DNA of 64,000 nt. It comes from Auanema rhodensis (lineage: Eukaryota > Animalia > Nematoda). Shown here one piece after another: positions 32,833 through 57,730 of the stretch. A program made the position numbers and the translations under genes. Position 1 is the stretch's first letter, and each line of letters opens with the position of its first letter. The stretch is taken from positions 10,230,001-10,294,000 of the forward strand of contig OZ059898.1 in assembly GCA_964057225.1 (NCBI GenBank), read 5' to 3'. Under the pieces are notes generated by a model. It ran no database searches. It was not told where the DNA came from and worked only from the letters and a program-made list of their open reading frames with translations.

Positions 32833-34040
32833 TTCGAAAATGTTAGATTGTTTCCGAAAAATTATGAAAAGTCAAGTTCTACTGATTTGAAGAGAATTGT
32901 AAGTTTTAGAAAATAATTAAAAATAAGTTCTCTCTACTATTAACTGATTGTCGGCTAAAATATGGTAACAGTTTTTATAAAAAGTTTCCATGATTAGGAT
33001 TAAACAAAAAAAAGAATTAAAAAGAAACACTTCTTGTTTACTTACTTGATTATACTACTTGAAATTCGAAAAAAAGTAAAAAACAATTGAGAAAGCGACA
33101 TAAACAGTTGAACGATTTGAAGAGAATTGTAAGTTTAAGAAAAGAATTAAAGTTTAGCTTTGTCTACTATTAACTGATTATCGGCTGAAATATGGTGACA
33201 GTTTTTTATTAAAAGTTTCCATGATTAAGATTAAACAAAGAAAAAAAAATCAAAGAGAGACACTTCTTGTTTACTTATTTGATTATAATACTTGAAATTC
33301 CAAAAACAGTAGAATAAAATAGAGAAAGCGACGAAAAAAGTTGAACGATTTGAAGAGAATTGTAAGTTTTAGAAAAGAATTAAAGTTCAGCTATCTCTAC
33401 TATTAACTGATTATCGGCTAAAATAAGATAACAGTTTTTATTAAAAGTTTTCATGATTAGGATTAAACAAAAAAAAGAATCAAAAAGAAACACTTCTTGT
33501 TTACTTATTTGATTATAATACTTGAAATTCCAAAAACAGTAGAATAAAATAGAGAAAGCGACGAGAAAAGTTGAACGATTTGAAGAGAATTGTAAGTTTT
33601 AGAAAAGAATTAAAGTTCAGCTATCTCTACTATTAACTGATTATCGGCTAAAATAAGGTAACAGTTTTTATTAAAACGAGTAAAACTGTTGAACGATTTG
33701 AAGACAATCGGCTAAAATAAGGTAACAGTTTTTATTAAAGCGAGTAAAACTGTTGAACGATTTGAAGACAATTGTAAGTTGAAGAAAAAAATTAAAGTTT
33801 AGCTCTCTCTACTATTTAATGATTGTCGGCTAAAATATGGTAACAGTTTTTATTAAAAGTTTCCATGATTAAGATTAAACAAAGAAAAAAAAATCAAAGA
33901 GAAACACTTCTTGTTTACTAATTTGATTATAACACTTGAAAATCCAACAAAAGTAAAATAAAACTGTAAAAGCGAGTAAAACTGTTGAAATAAAACAGTT
34001 TTTATTAAATATAAATGATATTTTTTTATAAAAATGAAGT

Positions 34041-34111
34041 TGCATCGGCCGGGAATCGAACCCGGGTCGCCCGCGTGGCAGGCGAGCATTCTACCACTGA
34101 ACCACCGATGC
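34041..34111 (-). tRNA. tRNA-Gly(GCC), adjacent to the retrotransposon 5' LTR
   Basis: Matches array consensus; 57 bp separate its 5' end from the LTR. Confidence 0.95.
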
Positions 34112-34168
34112 TTCGAAAATGTTAGATTGTTTCCGAAAAATTATGAAAAGTCAAGTTCTACTGATTTG

Positions 34169-34232
34169 TGTCGCGATAAGCGAGTGAGTTTGTATAATTT
34201 TTTTATCTTCAACAATTGTTTTATTCGTTTCT

Positions 34233-34289
<57 letters not shown>

Positions 34290-34539
34290 TTCTTCTTTCT
34301 TCTAACTTCCTAAGTAATTTTTATCCGTACCACATGTTGTGTTATACATGTGGCATGACTAACTCTTTGTTTCAGGCTGACGACCGCCCACGAGAAGAGA
34401 TCAGTCTTACATTTTCAACGTTCGCAGTCAGTGATTTTATTCCGTGCTTGTCTTGTTAATTCATCAATAAACCCTTTTCTACATATTCAATTTGTGTTTT
34501 ACTTCCAACCATACTATACACTTGTGGTATATCGCCACA
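34169..34539 (+). repeat. 5' LTR (371 bp)
   Basis: Starts TGTCGCGATA and ends TATCGCCACA (9/10 terminal inverted repeat). Direct repeat of 43580-43942. Contains (CT)25 and AATAAA at 34466-34471. Confidence 0.96.
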
Positions 34540-34542
34540 AAT

Positions 34543-34591
34543 TGGTGCACCGGCCGGGAATCGAACCCGGGTCGCCCGCGTGGCAGGTGAG
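34543..34591 (+). promoter_or_regulatory. Extended primer-binding site complementary to the 3' part of mature tRNA-Gly(GCC), including CCA
   Basis: Begins 3 nt after the 5' LTR: TGG + TGCAcCGGCCGGGAATCGAACCCGGGTCGCCCGCGTGGCAGGtGAG; 47/49 match to the reverse complement of the array tRNA + CCA. Confidence 0.93.
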
Positions 34592-34821
34592 ATACAACTC
34601 GAACCAAGCGTGTTTGAGCAAAAAACATACTTAATAAAAATCGTCGCGATCATAAGTCCACGTCAAGTCACACCAAACAGACTTGAACAATAAGCAAACT
34701 CTGAAATTAGAAACAGAGGTTTCAATTCCCTTACGTTCACATATACTGTGATCACCAAACAAACAAAGAAAAAAGAAAACAAAAAAGGAATATAAGCATT
34801 ATTCCTACATCTACAACAAAA

Positions 34822-37800
34822 ATGTCACTCCTTTTTGTCAATCATATCAAACAATCTAACCAGTTTCTTGGAGAACTGCTTACACGATACGAGATGGAAG
34901 TGAAGGACCTTCCTGGTATTCTGGTAGATTGCGACTTCCACACTGAGGAAGAAGAGGAAACCCTCTCTTGCCTTATCATTCGCTGGACAAAAGTCCAACA
35001 CCAATTCAAAGAATCGTTGAAAAATCATCAAGATAACGAGAAAAAATTCCAAACATTTTACGAAGCATTAGACAAAACGCTTCGTAAAGCATTAGACGAA
35101 CAGTACATCGCCTTCACATCCGATGAAGACTTTGAACCCAACATTAAAAAGGTTCAAAACGCCATTATTGAGCTTGACGAACACATCATGAAAGCCGAAC
35201 GCATACTTAGAAAGCTGAGAAAAACGCTTCATAAGAATGAATCTGAGCACAACAGCAATTGCTCAACAGAAAACAATGAAACAGAAAACAAATCGAATGA
35301 TCAATTTCTGGAAATTATCAAGTCATTCCTACACATCCAACAAACTAGCATCCAAAAACCAGCGATGTCGCTACCTACATTTGATGGCAAACCAGAGAAC
35401 TTCAAATCATTCTGGGGCCGTTTTGATAGACTTGTTCATGATAATGAACAGTTTACAACCTTAGAAAAGGTAAACCTACTCTGTGAAAGCCTCAAAGGCG
35501 ATTCACAAATAGCAATCAGAGGAATAGAACCCTCTGCTCAAAATTATGAGCTCATGCGTGAAGCATTAGTTTCTGAATTTGGAGACTATTCGTCGGATAT
35601 CAACTCTCTTTTAACACAACTACGTAATTTGAGATTTGCAAGCAATAATGCAAAATCATGTAAAGAAACATTTGGGGAAACCAAGGCACTTATCAGGCAA
35701 ATTGAAGCAGCCGGAGCTACAGTATCCCGCGAAATGTGTACCGCGATGATTCTCAACAAATTCCCATACCACATCGTGGAAGACATTCTAATTTATCCAA
35801 ACAACTACCATTCCACTAAAGAAATGCTGACAGCTGTAGACCACAAAATCTATTCCTTTTTTCTAAAAGAACAAACAAGAAATAGTCATGAACAAAAGTT
35901 TCGAAATCCCAAAGAGAATGTCACATCTGTAGCACATAAAGAAAACTCCGTAGAACAACGGAAAACCCAAACTTGGCCATGTGTTTTCTGCGACTCATCC
36001 GAACATCGCTTTTATCATTGCACCACATTTGAAACACCAGAGAAAAGAAGACACCGCATCCGCGGAAAGGCCATCTGTTGGATTTGTTTTTCCGAGAAAC
36101 ACAAAAGTTCCGAATGCAGAAAACAAAAATGTCGAAATTGCCAAGGAGACCATAATTCCTCCTTGTGCTCACAAGGAAGAAACAACGTGCAAAATATCCA
36201 AAAAGATAAAGAAACTTCTACAATTAAAAAAGATCAGGCTTTACTGATCACCACAGAAGAATCATTGAATAAAAAAACAACAGATTATAAACCAGAATCT
36301 GACACTAATCAAATTCCTACTGAGGCACTCAATGCACCAGTATCACTTAATCACATTGCCGACACCCATAATATTGAAGAAAGTCAAGTAATATTACGCA
36401 CAGCAATGGCAAACATATACAATCACAATAGTAAAAAATATGAGCAAGTACGCATGCTCATAGACGAAGGATCTATGAGATCGTTTATATCTAAGGACTT
36501 ATCCACTATGTTAGGATTGCCCATCCTTGGTTCTCAAAAGAAAACCTTTTACGGTATCGGAGCATTGTCCGAAACGCACGAAGTTCAGGACGTAAAGGTA
36601 ATTATTGGAACCTCAAGTGGATCCCTTATCGTAACAAAACTATTCACCAAACCCATGTTAACCACACCCATACGTTGTCCAAAACTATCTAAAGAAGACT
36701 TGAAATTTATAAAGACAAGAAAAATAAAATTAGCCAATCCACAAACAAACGGAGAATTATTTACTCCGGATATACTGATAGGTATGGATAGATACAAACT
36801 GTTCATGCATTTAAACGAAGAAACCGAACTCCCCTCACGTATGAGATTGAAAAATTCGGTATTCGGCCACATGATACATGGAGAAGCTCCTCTTCCCGAT
36901 AATACACAACAAGAAGTAATATTATGCTCTACAGTAGAAGAAATAACAAAAGAAACCTCTCATAAAGAACTCCTCACTAATCTGTTTGAACTGGATTCTA
37001 TCGGCATCAATACAGAAAATGCCAACGCAGACCGCACTATTGATTACTATGAAGAATACTCAAAAGATATAAAAATTGAGAACAACCGCATTATTGCACC
37101 GTTCCCGTTAAAAAATAACTTCAAAAATCTTAAAAACAACAAAATGCCCGCGTACCATAGATTCGTATCCCTATGGCGAAAGTTACTGCACAATCCAGAA
37201 ATGCTCTCACACTATACTACAACCATTGAAAGTTACCTCAAAGATAACATTGTCGAACAAATTCCCAACAATCACCAGGAGCCTTTAGAGTTTTATATGC
37301 CCCACCATGGGGTTTGGAAGCCCAGCAAGGCTAACCCTCTCAGAATCGTTTTTGACGCCTCCGCTAAACAGAAAGACAGCCCATCGTTGAATGAGATAAT
37401 ACACACAGGACGATCATTTATCACATATATACACGACATCATGATCTCCTGCAGAACAAGACCAATATTAATAACATGCGATATCAAAGCCGCATTTTTA
37501 CAAATACAACTGACAGAGAATCACAAAAATCTATGCAAATTCTTTTGGATAAAAAACAAAGAATACCCAATATCTCACAACAATATCATAACCCTTCGAT
37601 TCAACAGATTACCGTTCGGTATCACTGCATCCCCCAGCGTATTGAACATGGGCATAAAATGGTTCTTAGAATCAAAAGTAGACAACCCATTAGCTATGGA
37701 AATACTGAACAACTTATACGTTGACAATATCATTCTTACAGCAAATACAACAGCAGAAGCTATAACGAAATGTAAAGAAACCCAAAAACTATTCACAGAA

Positions 37801-38949
37801 ATAAACATGCATGTTCGCGAATTCTTGTCAAACGATGAACAAGTAATACAGAACCTTCCTGAAGAAGACAGATATCCGAACATGACAACCAAAATACTTG
37901 GCATATCTTTTAATAAAGAACATGACTCTTTCATTATCCCAATAAAAATAACAACGACTCACACAAGTTACACCAAGAGAATTCTACTCAGTCAGCTACA
38001 CTCAATATTTGATCCCATTGGATTAGCAGCACCATTACTGTTACCTCTCAAACTTATCTTGCGAGAAATCATAAACACAAAATTATCATGGGACCAACCC
38101 ATTGAATCAGATAATATCAAACAATGGGAACAACATATTAATCACATTAACAATCAGCAATTGACCATGAAAAGATATTTTAAATTCTCTGAACATAAAA
38201 CACAGTTATGGGTCTTTGCTGACGCAAGCAACCAAGCCATGGCCGCATGTTCATATTTCCAAACAAACGAGCAGATTAGTTCTCTGCTGAACGGTAAATC
38301 CCGCATAGCACCCAAAAATAAGACCACAATTCCTCGATTAGAATTATTAGCCATCCGCTTAGCAGTACGAATGGCATTAGCTATTGTAACCATATGCCCG
38401 AAAGTGGCAAAAGTCAACATTGTAAGCGATAGCAACATCGCGCTATCATGGATTATTTCTCTAAAATCCCTCCCATTGTTCATTAAAAATCAAACCAACA
38501 TTATAAATAAACAGCTACACCAAATCAAACAAGTATGTTGCAATGTAGAATTACATCATGTACACACCTCGTACAATACTGCAGACATCGGATCCCGAGG
38601 TGCAGACATCGAGAAACTACAAGATTCCGACTGGATAAAGGGTCCACATTGGTTAACTAAACTTTCTGCTCATAACCCTCTGACATCATTCGGCTCGCCT
38701 AAGCACTCTAACAGGAATAACGCAGAATCAGAATCGGAGCATCACAATGTGGTCCACATAATTATAGACAATCTTCCAGCCGATGATATTTGGAACATTC
38801 ATGAAAACTATGATGATGTGATCAAAACAATGACAACCGTAGGAAAATTATTCAAAAAATGGTTTCTTAAAGTCCATCCTAACAACGCCAACAAGTTGCA
38901 AACAATAAAACATCTCACGTCAACAGACACGAATAAGACATCAACATAA
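34822..38949 (+). CDS. gag-pol: BEL/Pao Gag-protease-RT-RNase H polyprotein (N-terminal part; truncated by a frameshift near 38937)
   Basis: DUF1759-like LPTFDGKPENFKSFWGRF; three knuckles CVFC..H..C, CWIC..H..C, CRNC..H..C; protease LIDEGS...DILIG; RT motifs YMPHH, LRIVFDAS, DIKAAFLQI, RLPFG, LYVDN; RNase H motifs FADAS, TIPRLEL, SDS, NTADIGSRG. Confidence 0.95.
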   Translation: MSLLFVNHIKQSNQFLGELLTRYEMEVKDLPGILVDCDFHTEEEEETLSCLIIRWTKVQHQFKESLKNHQDNEKKFQTFYEALDKTLRKALDEQYIAFTSDEDFEPNIKKVQNAIIELDEHIMKAERILRKLRKTLHKNESEHNSNCSTENNETENKSNDQFLEIIKSFLHIQQTSIQKPAMSLPTFDGKPENFKSFWGRFDRLVHDNEQFTTLEKVNLLCESLKGDSQIAIRGIEPSAQNYELMREALVSEFGDYSSDINSLLTQLRNLRFASNNAKSCKETFGETKALIRQIEAAGATVSREMCTAMILNKFPYHIVEDILIYPNNYHSTKEMLTAVDHKIYSFFLKEQTRNSHEQKFRNPKENVTSVAHKENSVEQRKTQTWPCVFCDSSEHRFYHCTTFETPEKRRHRIRGKAICWICFSEKHKSSECRKQKCRNCQGDHNSSLCSQGRNNVQNIQKDKETSTIKKDQALLITTEESLNKKTTDYKPESDTNQIPTEALNAPVSLNHIADTHNIEESQVILRTAMANIYNHNSKKYEQVRMLIDEGSMRSFISKDLSTMLGLPILGSQKKTFYGIGALSETHEVQDVKVIIGTSSGSLIVTKLFTKPMLTTPIRCPKLSKEDLKFIKTRKIKLANPQTNGELFTPDILIGMDRYKLFMHLNEETELPSRMRLKNSVFGHMIHGEAPLPDNTQQEVILCSTVEEITKETSHKELLTNLFELDSIGINTENANADRTIDYYEEYSKDIKIENNRIIAPFPLKNNFKNLKNNKMPAYHRFVSLWRKLLHNPEMLSHYTTTIESYLKDNIVEQIPNNHQEPLEFYMPHHGVWKPSKANPLRIVFDASAKQKDSPSLNEIIHTGRSFITYIHDIMISCRTRPILITCDIKAAFLQIQLTENHKNLCKFFWIKNKEYPISHNNIITLRFNRLPFGITASPSVLNMGIKWFLESKVDNPLAMEILNNLYVDNIILTANTTAEAITKCKETQKLFTEINMHVREFLSNDEQVIQNLPEEDRYPNMTTKILGISFNKEHDSFIIPIKITTTHTSYTKRILLSQLHSIFDPIGLAAPLLLPLKLILREIINTKLSWDQPIESDNIKQWEQHINHINNQQLTMKRYFKFSEHKTQLWVFADASNQAMAACSYFQTNEQISSLLNGKSRIAPKNKTTIPRLELLAIRLAVRMALAIVTICPKVAKVNIVSDSNIALSWIISLKSLPLFIKNQTNIINKQLHQIKQVCCNVELHHVHTSYNTADIGSRGADIEKLQDSDWIKGPHWLTKLSAHNPLTSFGSPKHSNRNNAESESEHHNVVHIIIDNLPADDIWNIHENYDDVIKTMTTVGKLFKKWFLKVHPNNANKLQTIKHLTSTDTNKTST

Positions 38950-40290
38950 TTGAAAAAATTTTGATCAGTAACAGCCAATCTAATATGAGCCTCGATGAGC
39001 TACAGCAAAGAAATATAAATTTAAAATTCTTCAAAGATACATGGGACATTTTTCGCGTAAGAAGTCGTTTACAAAATACTCTTCTTCCCGAAGAGACAAA
39101 AAACCCTATATTCCTTCTCAAAACAAACCCCATAGTTAAAAAACTGATCAACAAAATACACAAAGATAATAATCATCAAGGCAAAAATTTCACGCTTATT
39201 CAACTCAGACAAAAGTTCTATATACCAAAAATAACCGGAGTCATTAAGCAAACATTGAAAAACTGTGTGACATGTAAAAGATTTCAATCACATCCTTATG
39301 AATTACCAGATATGCCATCGCTACCAAAAGACAGAGCAATTCTTACAAGAGCATTCTTTTCAACAGGGTGTGATCTTATGGGCCCCTTCACCCTTCGAAA
39401 TGGGTCTAAAGTCCATATTTGTCTGTTTACATGCATGACAACTAGAGCGGTTCACTTAGAGGTAGTCACAAATCAATCCACAGTTGCCTTTATGAATGCA
39501 TTTAATAGATTTATTTCACGCAGAGGTACTCCAGAAATTATGCGCAGTGACTGCGCAGGAAACTTTATTCTGAGCTCAAAAATATTAGAAACCCTTGAAA
39601 AAACCTCGGATTACAATGAAAGAAGCATACTAAACACATTAGCTCAAAGAAAAATTAAATGGATATAGAACACTCCGCTATCTCCTTGGAAAGGAGGTTG
39701 TTGGGAACGCTTAGTAGGTGTCACCAAATCATCCCTCAAAAAATGCTTCGTTCCTAGTCGAATGTCACTAGATGATTTACACACAGCTATTGTAAAAATA
39801 GAAGCCATAATTAATACACGCCCACTCACCCATCCACACCCAGATAATTTAGATGCTTTACCCATAAGACCAATTGATTTTTTAACATCAGCAATAAAGT
39901 TTTCATTACCAGAAAACAATGATAACACTCATATATTCGATATTCACAGCGATATCCAAACGATTCAATCGACAGAACAAGCGCTAGAAGCTCTTCAGTT
40001 ATCAGAAGACTCAGCGTCTAAATTCTGGACACGTTTCCAGGAGGAGTATCTAACTAGTTTAAAAGACATTTTCAAACATAAAAACAAGAGAAAAAATCAC
40101 ACAAATCTCTTTCCTCACGAGGATGAAATAGTAATAATACAAAACGACATGTCGCCACGAGGAACATGGAAACTAGGTCGCATTATTGAAACAATTACTA
40201 GTTCAGATGGCAACATACGTTCAGCAAAAGTTGCAACAAGCAACGGAAACATAATTACTCGATCTATCAATCAGCTCTATCCACTAGAGA
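38937..40290 (+). pseudogene. Integrase domain, out of frame with RT/RH and interrupted by an in-frame TAG (39666-39668)
   Basis: HHCC finger (H-KDNN-H...CVTC), DLMGPF, RSDCAGNF, KWI*NTPLSPWKGGCWERLVG, INTRPL, WKLGRI...DGNIRSAKV...LYPLEI. ORFs 38961 and 39762 share the same frame. Confidence 0.9.
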
Positions 40291-42740
40291 TAAGATGCAA
40301 CACTAGCAACAACAAAATCATAGAAGACAACTCACACATAGTCCAAGAAAATAATAGCTCAACAGATAGAATACCACATACTGATACCGTATTAGACAAC
40401 ATACACTCCGATCATCCTATAGAACATACAGATGAAACAATACATGAGAACAATAACATAAATGATAGCAATCATAATTACGATATTGCATATGAATCAG
40501 ATAACTCTCAACATGATAATACATACACTCCAGAAACAGAGAATAATGAGGATGCAACAAATGATCGACCTCAAAATAAAACAAAGCTATCATCAGTAAA
40601 AACAGCAAAATATACAGAACAAGATGAGGTCACTGAGAAGGAAAATATAAAAGCCTTCCCACTAAAAATGTCCTATGCCACACACCAAAGAAAAAATAAA
40701 ATAAACCCAAAAATAGCAGCTGACATAATGAAAGCCCTTTCATTACCGATTATAATTACTTCGACGTATGCCGAAGAAATCAATAGTTGCAAGGACTCTA
40801 ACATGTTCACCACAAAACTTATAGCGAATCCTCATTGCTCCCCAGAAATGGCAACATGGACAGTGATAATAACCATTATGGCAGTTACCCTCATAGTCTC
40901 TTGTCTATGCCGCATGGGTTACAGCCAATATAGATATAAGACATGGTCCAGAAACACTCAAACCATGCTCAACATCATGAAATTAAAACATAAAACAATC
41001 TCCGAACAAGAAGATCATGAAACTGATCAAAAAATAACAGAAGACCACAATGATACGTTGCAATTAAAACAAACGAACACACAAGACGCTAATATTGTGG
41101 ATCATGAAACCTTTCAAAAGCATATTTACCCTATTTTAAACCATACGAGAAAGCCACCAAAATTCTCTCTCTTTACTAGAGGGTCGCAAACATCTTTACC
41201 ATCGTTACTGGCAATCATCTTGGCTTTATGTATTGGAAGCTGCAGTTCATGTTCCGATGTTCATGTTCAACACTTCGTTAACATACGATGCGATGACAAC
41301 TTAGCTTGTTATCACGAATACAGTCAAGATATCATATTTTCTCCCGGAACAAAACAATTATGCATTACCATAACGCATTCTAATCATGAAATTGGTCAAT
41401 TTAAAATAACTAAACTATATACTGAACATGTCTGCCAGAAGAATACTAGATACTTCACTAGACAGACAACCGTCAACATATTGAGCATATTACGATGCCG
41501 TCACCGGGGCTCGTGTGACGGAACATGTGAAACTAACTCGCTTCATAATAAAATCGAGGAACTACAACCATATACGTTCCCTTCACAATCAGGTTGCTTC
41601 ACATCGTCAGCAAGATTTTACACATGTCCTATGATTTGGACAGATCCGTGCCTTTTCTACAAAATAGAGCATATACCCGTCACTGAGGAAGTATACGAAG
41701 TCTATACTTGTGATAGTTGGTCCACCCAAACCGTATTTAATATAGAAACAACATTACTCCAGCAGAAAAATAATTACAATATCACTCTACAACCTTACAC
41801 GAAAAATCGTGAACAACTTTTCAATATAACAACGTTATCACAATCACAACCTCCTCCAGAAATGTACACAAAATTATTTTTTTCCTCCAAAGAAAACACG
41901 TACATTACGGATATACACACAAAGGGAATAATTCAATGTGGAACAGAGGAAGCCGCATTAAAACATTTTAATAACTGTACAGTATCCTCATTCTGCCCTT
42001 GCACATTCAATAGATTTGATGACATAAAATGTAGGTGTGATACCCCTACTTTTGAAAAAATGTCCAATACATCAGACATAAAATCTCCTAACCAAAACTT
42101 TAAAACTAAAGATAACACGTTATCATTCTCTACGAATTTAGACGAAAATTTAGTTACGGTCGATTCATCCCTATTCTTAAACTCAGTGATCTTCTCCAAC
42201 AATTTGCCTTGCGCACCTGCCCTGACAAAACTATCAGGTTGCTACTCCTGCGGGCAGGGTGCATTCGCAGAATTCCAATGCCTTACGGCAGAAGAAACAT
42301 GGATTTCTATCGAATGTCAAAAAGAAGTATTCATGATAAAATGCTCTCCAAAAGTAGCAATCACAAAAGTAACAATGAAAAGAGAAAATTCTCAGATTGA
42401 TGAATTATGCTACACCACATGCGACAATAAAAAAATTAAGATCATTATTAAAGGAATATTACATCACATAGCAAGCATAGATGAAATAAACGAAAGTGAC
42501 TCAAGTAAGGGTACAGAATCCAAATCCATTGACTTTGCTCCAATCTTCAAGTTAATTTTATCAAAGTTGGGAATCATATTGATAGGCGTTGCAATAACCG
42601 CCACCATAGGATATGTGGCATGTACACCCATCATGTACTGTGTAGTTTTGAATACAGTCTTAACCACACAATGGATAGCTACCAGGATATTCACACTGTG
42701 GATAAAATCAAAAGCCTTATTTCGGGATCAAAGATTTTAA
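39762..42740 (+). CDS. env: Integrase C-terminus fused in frame to an envelope glycoprotein resembling phlebovirus G2/Gc (ectodomain ~41250-42550)
   Basis: Hydrophobic segment WTVIITIMAVTLIVSCLC; signal-like SLLAIILALCIGSCSS; Cys-rich ectodomain with RCRHRGSC, PCLFY, YTCDSW, LSGCYSCGQGA; C-terminal TM LGIILIGVAITATIGYV. Family assigned from recalled motifs, not from an HMM. Confidence 0.82.
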   Translation: MSLDDLHTAIVKIEAIINTRPLTHPHPDNLDALPIRPIDFLTSAIKFSLPENNDNTHIFDIHSDIQTIQSTEQALEALQLSEDSASKFWTRFQEEYLTSLKDIFKHKNKRKNHTNLFPHEDEIVIIQNDMSPRGTWKLGRIIETITSSDGNIRSAKVATSNGNIITRSINQLYPLEIRCNTSNNKIIEDNSHIVQENNSSTDRIPHTDTVLDNIHSDHPIEHTDETIHENNNINDSNHNYDIAYESDNSQHDNTYTPETENNEDATNDRPQNKTKLSSVKTAKYTEQDEVTEKENIKAFPLKMSYATHQRKNKINPKIAADIMKALSLPIIITSTYAEEINSCKDSNMFTTKLIANPHCSPEMATWTVIITIMAVTLIVSCLCRMGYSQYRYKTWSRNTQTMLNIMKLKHKTISEQEDHETDQKITEDHNDTLQLKQTNTQDANIVDHETFQKHIYPILNHTRKPPKFSLFTRGSQTSLPSLLAIILALCIGSCSSCSDVHVQHFVNIRCDDNLACYHEYSQDIIFSPGTKQLCITITHSNHEIGQFKITKLYTEHVCQKNTRYFTRQTTVNILSILRCRHRGSCDGTCETNSLHNKIEELQPYTFPSQSGCFTSSARFYTCPMIWTDPCLFYKIEHIPVTEEVYEVYTCDSWSTQTVFNIETTLLQQKNNYNITLQPYTKNREQLFNITTLSQSQPPPEMYTKLFFSSKENTYITDIHTKGIIQCGTEEAALKHFNNCTVSSFCPCTFNRFDDIKCRCDTPTFEKMSNTSDIKSPNQNFKTKDNTLSFSTNLDENLVTVDSSLFLNSVIFSNNLPCAPALTKLSGCYSCGQGAFAEFQCLTAEETWISIECQKEVFMIKCSPKVAITKVTMKRENSQIDELCYTTCDNKKIKIIIKGILHHIASIDEINESDSSKGTESKSIDFAPIFKLILSKLGIILIGVAITATIGYVACTPIMYCVVLNTVLTTQWIATRIFTLWIKSKALFRDQRF

Positions 42741-43036
42741 AAGCATAAGAGAAGAATTTCTTGTGGAGATAAAATTTAAAATTAAAAATTGAAATAATAA
42801 TGAAACAAAAGAAAAAGAAAGCATTATGTACGAATATAACCATTGTAATAAAACAATATCATTGTTTTTCTTTCTTTTCAATTTATGGTAGTATCAAGTT
42901 TCTTTTATCCAACTCAGTTACATAACACATAACCTTTTGTACAGGCTCTAAAATTCATTGTATCTGTAACAAGATAACCTAAACACATCATTGTACAATG
43001 AACTAATAGATGTTAATCAGCGTTTAAAGTCCAGAT

Positions 43037-43549
43037 GTGAACATGTATATAAGGATGCAGATCATGTCTTTCCTATATTCCATGAAAATGGAAGATATTG
43101 TCTCGAATATAATTGAGAATGCTTCCTTTGAGGAAGAGCTCAAAAAATATTCCCATCTACCTAACACTGCTGCCAATCTGAGGCAACTAATTGTGCTTGA
43201 AAAGAGGCTCTACGAGCACCTAGCTAGCGCGGTGAACCATCTATCCGAACGACTGGACAATATTCAACATTCGTTAAATCTGAAACTAGACAATTTGACC
43301 ATTCAGACTGCTCCTAAAGCTTCATGTGTATTCTGCAATAAACCGACAGCTGATGGGCACCGTACTGCGGCCTGTCCGGTTTATCCTTCCTCACCGGAAC
43401 GCACTCTCCGTCTTCATGAACTGGGGTTATGCATCAGATGTTTGAATCAAAAACATCCAGCGATATGCGAGGTATCCTGCTATAGATGTAAGGCGGATAC
43501 GCATCATGGAGTGGTTTGTGGAGATATAAAACGTAAAAGACCTTTGTAG
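43037..43549 (+). CDS. Accessory 3' ORF: helical/coiled-coil region + three Cys/His zinc knuckles + basic C-terminus (start uncertain; first ATG at 43043)
   Basis: 170 open codons with higher GC than the flanks; CVFCNKPTADGHRTAAC, CIRCLNQKHPAIC, CYRCKADTHHGVVC, KRKRPL; stop 30 nt before the 3' LTR. Confidence 0.75.
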   Translation: MNMYIRMQIMSFLYSMKMEDIVSNIIENASFEEELKKYSHLPNTAANLRQLIVLEKRLYEHLASAVNHLSERLDNIQHSLNLKLDNLTIQTAPKASCVFCNKPTADGHRTAACPVYPSSPERTLRLHELGLCIRCLNQKHPAICEVSCYRCKADTHHGVVCGDIKRKRPL

Positions 43550-43571
43550 GCCTTCTTCTCATTCCCGCATT

Positions 43572-43579
43572 GCCGGGAG
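43572..43579 (+). promoter_or_regulatory. Putative short polypurine tract (plus-strand primer)
   Basis: GCCGGGAG abuts the 3' LTR start; short and imperfect, assigned by position. Confidence 0.5.
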
Positions 43580-43643
43580 TGTCGCGATAAGCGAGTGAGT
43601 TTGTATAATTTTTTTATCTTCAACAATTGTTTTATTCGTTTCT

Positions 43644-43692
<49 letters not shown>

Positions 43693-43942
43693 TTCTTCTT
43701 TCTTCTAACTTCCTAAGTAATTTTTATCCGTACCACATGTTGTGTTATACATGTGGCATGACTAACTCTTTGTTTCAGGCTGACGACCGCCCACGAGAAG
43801 AGATCAGTCTTACATTTTCAACGTTCGCAGTCAGTGATTTTATTCCGTGCTTGTCTTGTTAATTCATCAATAAACCCTTTTCTACATATTCAATTTGTGT
43901 TTTACTTCCAACCATACTATACACTTGTGGTATATCGCCACA
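43580..43942 (+). repeat. 3' LTR (363 bp)
   Basis: Identical by eye to the 5' LTR except (CT)21 instead of (CT)25, which accounts for the 8-bp length difference. Confidence 0.96.
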
Positions 43943-44685
43943 ATTTAAAGAGAATTGTAAGTTTTAGAAAAGAATTAAAGTTCAGCTATCTCTACTATTA
44001 ACTGATTATCGGCTAAAATAAGGTAACAGTTTTTATTAAAAGTTTCCATGATTAAGATTACACAAAGAAAAAAAATCAAAGAGAAACACTTCTTGTTTAC
44101 TTATTTGATTATAATACTTGAAATTCCAAAAACAGTAGAATAAAATAGAGAAAGCGACGAAAAAAGTTGAACGATTTGAAGAGAATTGTAAGTTTTAGAA
44201 AAGAATTAAAGTTTAGCTTTGTCTACTATTAACTGATTATCGGCTGAAATATGGTGACAGTTTTTTTTTAAAAGTTTCCATGATTAAGATTAATCAAAGA
44301 AAAAAAATCAAAGAGAAACACTTCTTGTTTACTAATTTGATTATAACACTTGAAATTCCAACAAAAGTAAAGTAAAACTGTTAAAGCGAGTAAAACTGTT
44401 GAACAATTTGAAGACAATTGTAAGTTGAAGAATAAAATTAAAGTTTAGCTCTCTCTACTATTAACTGAATGTCGGCTAAAATATGGTAACAGTTTTTATT
44501 AAAAGTTTCCAGGATTAAGATTAAACAAAGAAAAAAAATCAAAGAGAAACACTTCTTGTTTACTAATTTGATTATAACACTTGAAATTCCAACAAATGTA
44601 AAATAAAACTGTGAAAGCGGGTAAAACTGTTGAACTAAAACAGTCTTTATAAAATATAAATGATATTTTTTTATAAAATTGAAGT

Positions 44686-44756
44686 TGCATCGGCCGGGAA
44701 TCGAACCCGGGTCGCCCGCGTGGCAGGCGAGCATTCTACCACTGAACCACCGATGC
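44686..44756 (-). tRNA. tRNA-Gly(GCC)
   Basis: Matches array consensus. Confidence 0.95.
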
Positions 44757-57279: not shown

Positions 57280-57350
57280 TGCATCGGCCGGGAATCGAAC
57301 CCGGGTTGCCCGCGTGGCAGGCGAGCATTCTACCACTGAACCACCGATGC
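57280..57350 (-). tRNA. tRNA-Gly(GCC), variable-loop G>A; 7-bp 5'-flank deletion
   Basis: CCCGGGTTGCC on +; followed by TTGTTAG. Confidence 0.88.
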
Positions 57351-57659
57351 TTGTTAGATTGTTTCCGAAAAATTATGAAAAGTCAAGTTCTACTGATTTG
57401 AAGAGAATTGTAAGTTTTAGAAAAGAATTAAAGTTCAGCTATCTCTACTATTAACTGATTATCGGCTGAAATATGGTGACAGTTTTTTTTTAAAAGTTTC
57501 CATGATTAAGATTAATCAAAGAAAAAAAAATCAAAGAGAAACACTTCTTGTTTACTAATTTGATTATAACACTTGAAATTCCAACAAAAGTAAAGTAAAA
57601 CTGTTGAACTAAAACAGTCTTTATAAAATATAAATGATATTTTTTTATAAAAGTGAAGT

Positions 57660-57730
57660 TGCATCGGCCGGGAATCGAACCCGGGTCGCCCGCGTGGCAG
57701 GCGAGCATTCTACCACTGAACCACCGATGC
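57660..57730 (-). tRNA. tRNA-Gly(GCC)
   Basis: Matches array consensus. Confidence 0.95.

Follow-up and report, generated by a model that had tools for sequence, protein, structure and literature searches.

The window analysed here, a stretch of 64,000 nucleotides from the nematode Auanema rhodensis, is a single array of tRNA-Gly(GCC) genes and satellite DNA, into which one endogenous belpaovirus has integrated recently, immediately upstream of a gene for its own primer tRNA and with a primer-binding site that pairs to that tRNA over an unusual 49 nt. The primer site, which ends at tRNA position 27, is a firmer and more unusual fact than the insertion site; as evidence for targeting, one young insertion in a tRNA array is suggestive at most. 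Together with an extra open reading frame related to zinc knuckles, the 49-nt primer site is the most notable feature of the element.

Structure and coding content of the element

The LTR element spans positions 34169-43942 on the plus strand (9,774 bp) and is organized as follows.

34169-34539, plus strand: 5' LTR, 371 bp, TG..CA ends
34540-34542, plus strand: spacer between LTR and primer site, 3 nt
34543-34591, plus strand: extended primer-binding site, TGG and 46 nt, complementary to tRNA-Gly(GCC) from position 73 to position 27
34592-34821, plus strand: leader to the start of gag
34822-42740, plus strand: gag-pol-env coding region, one long frame, interrupted twice
35380-35775, plus strand: gag domain, DUF1759 (Pfam, E = 1.5e-15)
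35980-36117, plus strand: two CX2CX4HX4C zinc knuckles after the gag domain
37423-37815, plus strand: reverse transcriptase, RVT_1, with motif YVDN (Pfam)
37972-38433, plus strand: Peptidase_A17, a Pao-retrotransposon signature (Pfam, E = 9.5e-41)
39135-39575, plus strand: integrase zinc-binding domain (H2C2) and part of the catalytic core (rve) (Pfam)
39996-40286, plus strand: integrase C-terminal domain, DUF5641 (Pfam)
41250-42650, plus strand: env, phlebovirus G2 (Gc) fusion domain and G2 C-terminal domain (Pfam)
43037-43549, plus strand: extra 170-aa open reading frame between env and the 3' LTR, with zinc-knuckle likeness
43575-43579, plus strand: polypurine-tract position, purine run GGGAG abutting the 3' LTR
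43580-43942, plus strand: 3' LTR, 363 bp, TG..CA ends

The sole difference between the two LTRs lies in a perfect (TC)n run in their U3 part (34236-34286 in the 5' and 43647-43689 in the 3' copy), which is 8 nt shorter in the 3' LTR, while no substitutions separate them. As the LTRs are identical apart from this microsatellite, the belpaovirus is young. The LTR lengths of 371 and 363 bp, the total of 9,774 bp and the 5-nt flank repeat with one difference all lie within the description of the Belpaoviridae, i.e. LTRs of 0.2-1.2 kb, a genome of 4.2-10 kb and a short target-site duplication (PMC8742986). The GGGAG purine run is 5 nt long, as compared to about 10 nt in the family description (PMC8742986).

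The BEL/Pao identity proposed in the initial annotation is borne out by Peptidase_A17, by DUF1759, by the domain order (RVT_1, Peptidase_A17, integrase H2C2/rve and DUF5641, as Belpaoviridae require), by the YVDN motif and by the env protein. Among solved structures, the nearest to env is that of Atlas virus Gc (7A4A, E = 5e-20), with phlebovirus and bandavirus Gc proteins ranking behind it. The Pfam E-values for env are 1.2e-42 (Phlebovirus_G2) and 9.7e-07 (Phlebo_G2_C). Nematode belpaoviruses have been reported to be marked by YVDN instead of YXDD in the reverse transcriptase, by an atypical env and by a single Gag-Pol-Env frame (PMC9094657). Based on YVDN, the phlebovirus-like Gn-Gc env and the single long frame, the element is, judged from its coding sequence, a divergent Cer13/Atlas-type belpaovirus (BEL/Pao), a type that by itself makes a nematode the probable host; no close protein relative names one. 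The protein relatives found by search all have the same domains, and those of gag-pol, found in insects, a fish and a bryozoan among others, are distant only, none exceeding 29% identity. The env search yielded no relative within its length range, and for gag-pol no solved structural relative was found. When the coding region was searched piece by piece, each piece separately, no chromodomain was detected in any of them (Pfam, E <= 0.01).

Like Atlas virus of Ancylostoma ceylanicum and Cer13 of C. elegans, the element measures 9-10 kb, holds gag-pol-env in one frame, and has a YVDN reverse transcriptase motif and a phlebovirus-like Gn-Gc env of the class II fusion type (PMC9094657). Identical LTRs, indicating recent insertion, are likewise shared. 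However, the relationship to Atlas/Cer13 is only distant, as reflected by the E-value of env against 7A4A, and the integrase is interrupted twice, whereas Atlas virus is uninterrupted. Further differences to Atlas/Cer13 are the extra 3' open reading frame with zinc knuckles and the 49-nt primer site; the Atlas virus papers mention neither a tRNA, a primer site nor integration sites.

Both interruptions of the frame fall in the integrase part of pol, one being a change of frame and the other an in-frame stop, and the integrase pieces align in order on the continuous integrase of a relative. Identical LTRs combined with an interrupted integrase fit three readings, namely that proteins are provided by other copies, that recoding signals are present, or that the interruptions are assembly errors. 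At 39996-42650 (plus strand), a single stop-free frame covers both the C-terminal domain of the integrase and the Gn-Gc env, as in Atlas virus.

For the extra 170-aa open reading frame (43037-43549), no Pfam family was found. The C-terminal third displays CX2CX4HX4C-type spacings and is similar to the zinc-knuckle region in gag of the same element (27% over 94 aa, pairwise E = 4e-6). The frame may represent an accessory gene or a duplicate of part of gag.

The host array and the insertion site

The element and its surroundings are arranged as follows in the window.

1-34168, minus strand: host array, left part, 35 tRNA-Gly(GCC) genes
34041-34111, minus strand: tRNA-Gly(GCC) gene adjoining the insertion (ARAGORN; Rfam tRNA, 66.6 bits)
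34112-34163, minus strand: conserved 5' cassette, 52 nt, undamaged
34164-34168: target-site duplication, left copy ATTTG, the first bases of the first satellite monomer
43943-43947: target-site duplication, right copy ATTTA, one difference to the left copy
43943-64000, minus strand: host array, right part, 23 tRNA-Gly(GCC) genes and satellite

The window thus represents one array, with 58 tRNA-Gly(GCC) genes in 54.2 kb, all on the minus strand, or one gene per ~935 bp. Each unit comprises a gene with its conserved 52-nt 5' cassette and T5 terminator, followed by an AT-rich satellite of ~230 bp in 2-6 copies, and the gene spacings cluster near 633, 865, 1095 and 1325 bp. Identical sequences are found for 45/58 genes, and the remaining 13 carry single or double substitutions, some of them in stems. 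The only non-array DNA in the window is the element itself, all else being similar to the standard unit; the G+C content is 28% for the array and 37% for the element. Searched by BLASTN with the complete element, the remaining 54 kb of the window gave no second copy, only a 46-nt block matching the 58 genes, and neither a solo LTR nor an element fragment is present at the other 57 genes of the window. Rfam identifies tRNA genes only in the window, apart from one sub-threshold tmRNA-like match at the primer site. No description of such a tRNA/satellite array was found in the literature.

Two irregularities of the array were observed. A 64-bp local tandem duplication (98% matches) is located at 33643-33772, within satellite DNA on the 3' side of the gene adjoining the insertion; the unit concerned has an odd length of 1,279 bp. 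At 57280-57730, two tRNA genes are only 380 bp apart from start to start, with less than two monomers in-between, the shortest unit of the array.

The 5' end of the adjoining gene points towards higher coordinates, and the belpaovirus on the plus strand and the tRNA gene on the minus strand are consequently in divergent orientation. The gap from the gene's 5' end to the first LTR base (34169) is exactly 57 nt (34112-34168). The gene is the majority allele of the array, the one present in 45/58 genes, with a T5 run starting 7 nt 3' of the gene and no encoded CCA in the 3' trailer, and its 52-nt 5' cassette is identical to the majority cassette. Satellite homology begins at G34163, so that the flank repeat (34164-34168) starts 1 nt past the cassette/satellite junction. 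On the right-hand side of the element, the nearest gene is located at 44686-44756.

These coordinates, with which the ARAGORN and Rfam calls agree, uphold what the initial annotation had noted, i.e. an element divergent from a tRNA-Gly(GCC) gene and 57 nt 5' of it, a gene and a 5' cassette that are undamaged (both equal the majority forms of the array), and a repeat starting just past the junction. The earlier observation is hence confirmed overall, with a correction of the right flank repeat: the target-site duplication had been given as ATTTG, which is correct for the left copy (34164-34168), but the right copy reads ATTTA (43943-43947). Since all other intact cassette junctions (56/56) are CTGATTTGA, the duplication is preserved at 4/5 positions, with the difference residing in the right copy. 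Subtraction of the element and one copy of the flank repeat from the spacing of the two bounding genes leaves 866 bp. As this equals the standard three-monomer unit, the commonest unit length, the insertion is clean.

An extended primer-binding site

Belpaovirus primer sites are 18 nt long and complementary to tRNA-Arg or tRNA-Gly (ICTV profile, PMC8742986). The choice of primer tRNA in the present element is therefore ordinary for the family, whereas the length of 49 nt, compared with these 18 nt, is unusual. The site matches mature tRNA-Gly(GCC) at 47/49 positions, beginning with TGG, the complement of CCA, and the 46-nt block that follows agrees with the plus strand of the gene at 44/46 positions; the complementarity to the tRNA of the adjoining gene, already pointed out in the initial annotation, is thereby established. 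The complement of the B box is unchanged. The site ends at tRNA position 27, the first base of the anticodon stem, with a differing base opposite G26. Of the two differences within the site, one faces tRNA position 69 (an A.C mismatch) and the other position 30 (which would be a G.U pair in RNA), and both are found in 0/58 array genes. Because the A.C mismatch at position 69, the one mismatch in the first 18 nt, falls inside the classical primer site, the primer may be another isodecoder, absent from the window; one with G at position 69 would fit the site better.

Since CCA is not encoded by the genes but its complement is present in the block, the block reflects mature tRNA and not gene DNA; an origin as captured gene DNA was rejected on these grounds. 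The LTRs have no substitutions and none of the 58 genes shares the two differences, which means that the differences predate the insertion and that the long block was inherited. The 49-nt primer site is accordingly a heritable feature of the lineage. Two further origins were considered and discarded: gene conversion from the array after insertion, in view of the two differences that no local gene contains and of the LTRs free of substitutions, and derivation from a 3' tRNA half, as the block extends past the anticodon loop to position 27. No long primer site was found reported for nematode belpaoviruses in the literature.

We propose that the long primer site marks how far the primer tRNA would be copied by plus-strand strong-stop synthesis in this host. 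Copying of tRNA-Gly(GCC) would then halt at position 26 rather than at position 58, and complementarity across the whole copied length would keep the second strand transfer matched. A parallel exists in HIV-1, where the complementarity to the primer tRNA-Lys3 reaches a second stop site, and where copying beyond the stop on the primer leads to DNA that is mismatched after transfer (PMC8599865). In both cases, complementarity beyond 18 nt would coincide with a further stop of reverse transcription on the tRNA; in HIV-1, though, the extension covers a few nt, to just before position 54 (PMC8599865), whereas the block of the belpaovirus is contiguous to position 27 and crosses the T arm, the variable region and the anticodon arm. 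By this analogy, a primer site reaching position 27 would suit a host tRNA with a copying stop at position 26, an explanation that we regard as plausible, if somewhat short of an even call. If shared by relatives, the primer site would represent a natural record of the reverse transcription stop on the host primer tRNA.

A tRNA-length sequence with a CCA end at the boundary of LTR and primer site has also been described for cqgypsy_1 of Culex quinquefasciatus (PMC3286476). That element, however, belongs to Ty3/gypsy, and its insert, two tRNA-like units of 149 bp together, is flanked by a 26-nt LTR duplication and has been called a putative Twin element (PMC3286476), while the belpaovirus has a single, partial antisense tRNA copy at the position of the primer site itself.

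Downstream of the block, the leader (34592-34606, plus strand) shows a weak collinear likeness to the D-arm/A-box part of the tRNA gene (12/14 and one gap; shuffle p about 0.01-0.03). This hints at a decayed rest of an older copy of the whole tRNA, which would have stayed intact only from position 27 on. Read on the minus strand, 34543-34605 forms a tRNA-like unit whose B box is unchanged and whose A box is degenerate. The sub-threshold tmRNA-like Rfam match (18 bits) lies on this antisense of the primer site and reflects the tRNA-like block, for which there is no ARAGORN call.

Possible targeting of tRNA genes and its alternatives

In compact genomes, retroelements that home in on tRNA genes follow the textbook 'safe haven' strategy. 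For the insertion described here, we consider regional bias or chance, that is an ordinary event in a tolerant array, the likeliest explanation of the location, at about even odds. In such an event, integrase would have inserted the element into one standard 866-bp array unit through a staggered 5-nt cut at -53 to -57 relative to the tRNA gene, where the first satellite monomer starts. The nearness to the gene would follow from the density of one gene per 0.9 kb in a highly redundant, insertion-tolerant array, and recognition of the gene would not be required. Positions within 57 nt 5' of a gene make up 6% of the array, and those within 57 nt of either gene end 12%. With a gene every ~0.9 kb and such a frequency by chance within the array, proximity alone is weak evidence; the caution in the initial annotation that a single insertion may be due to chance is in this way given numbers. 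The sparing of the gene adds little, since selection offers no explanation where so many genes are redundant, and since gene and cassette occupy a small share of each unit and are easily missed by chance. That the gene is the one for the element's own primer provides no extra evidence either, as tRNA-Gly is a usual primer of the family (PMC8742986) and simply coincides with the isotype of the array. On the other hand, a true preference for Pol III genes would look identical with one insertion, and if the array is small in the genome, an untargeted landing there and at -57 is improbable a priori. Furthermore, position -57, just outside the 52-nt cassette, resembles the ~50-bp insertion distance of TRE5-A in Dictyostelium.

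That resemblance is equally part of the case for tethering to the Pol III complex, in which integrase or another element protein would bind TFIIIB, TFIIIC or a Pol III subunit and thereby direct insertion to the upstream border of the transcription complex, as happens with Ty3, Tj1, DGLT-A and TRE5-A. We rate this explanation as possible but rather unlikely. It agrees with an insertion at -53 to -57, immediately beyond a cassette that is conserved in all units, at a distance comparable to that of TRE5-A, and with a gene, cassette and terminator that are all undamaged. In addition, compact genomes have repeatedly given rise to tRNA-gene targeting (PMC5006619), and an array with 58 targets would attract such an element. 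Ty3, Ty1, Tj1, DGLT-A and TRE5-A likewise insert upstream of a tRNA gene, at a distance of a few tens of nt, leaving the gene undamaged (PMC5911963, PMC5006619). Their preference, however, is documented by many insertions and by protein contacts, whereas here one insertion is available in a dense tRNA array, and they belong to other superfamilies (Ty1/copia, Ty3/gypsy and non-LTR) in unicellular hosts. Against tethering also stand the other 57 genes of the window, where copies, solo LTRs and fragments of the element are all absent, the chance frequency of 6-12% within the array, and the integrase tail, in which Pfam detects DUF5641 only and no known targeting module.

The reviews of Pol III-directed retroelements PMC5911963 and PMC5006619 describe targeting in yeast and Dictyostelium elements only, and contain no precedent for BEL/Pao elements or animal hosts. 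Our literature search found no report of tRNA-gene targeting by BEL/Pao either, in agreement with the remark in the initial annotation that none is known to have been established for these elements. That this belpaovirus lineage truly aims at Pol III genes, which would make it the first case in BEL/Pao and in an animal host, appears unlikely to us. If true, an animal belpaovirus targeting tRNA genes would extend the convergence to a new superfamily and a new kingdom, and would point to a contact between integrase and Pol III.

A preference for the array itself, with the gene as a bystander, would require that integrase favours the sequence at the monomer start (ATTTG context), AT-rich DNA or satellite chromatin. 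The duplicated bases are indeed the start of a satellite monomer, and the motif ATTTGAAGA occurs 185 times in the array, 56/185 of these sites being gene-proximal, so that such a preference would yield a proximal insertion with a chance of ~30%; the lower G+C content of the array (28% as compared to 37% for the element) is in line with it. Nonetheless, the window contains one insertion among ~185 equivalent sites, and neither a chromodomain nor another chromatin reader was detected (Pfam), leaving an array preference, in our view, distinctly improbable.

Guidance by homology, raised in the initial annotation, supposes that integration is steered or brought about by pairing between the tRNA-like block of 46-49 nt and tRNA-gene DNA. 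Although block and tRNA genes form direct repeats on the plus strand (44/46 identical) and the element resides in an array of exactly that gene, we dismiss it as very improbable, given integrase-type junctions (TG..CA, 5-nt flank repeat) that lie outside the homology, at distances of 57 nt to the gene and 374 nt to the block, a block that starts with the CCA complement absent from the genes and carries two differences seen in 0/58 of them, and a unit without rearrangement that still measures the standard 866 bp.

More speculatively, the antisense-tRNA block could take part in a targeting of Pol III genes, as its intact B box (the TFIIIC recognition site) next to U5 could, in double-stranded DNA, draw the incoming DNA to TFIIIC-rich tRNA arrays, a route that would need no change of the integrase.
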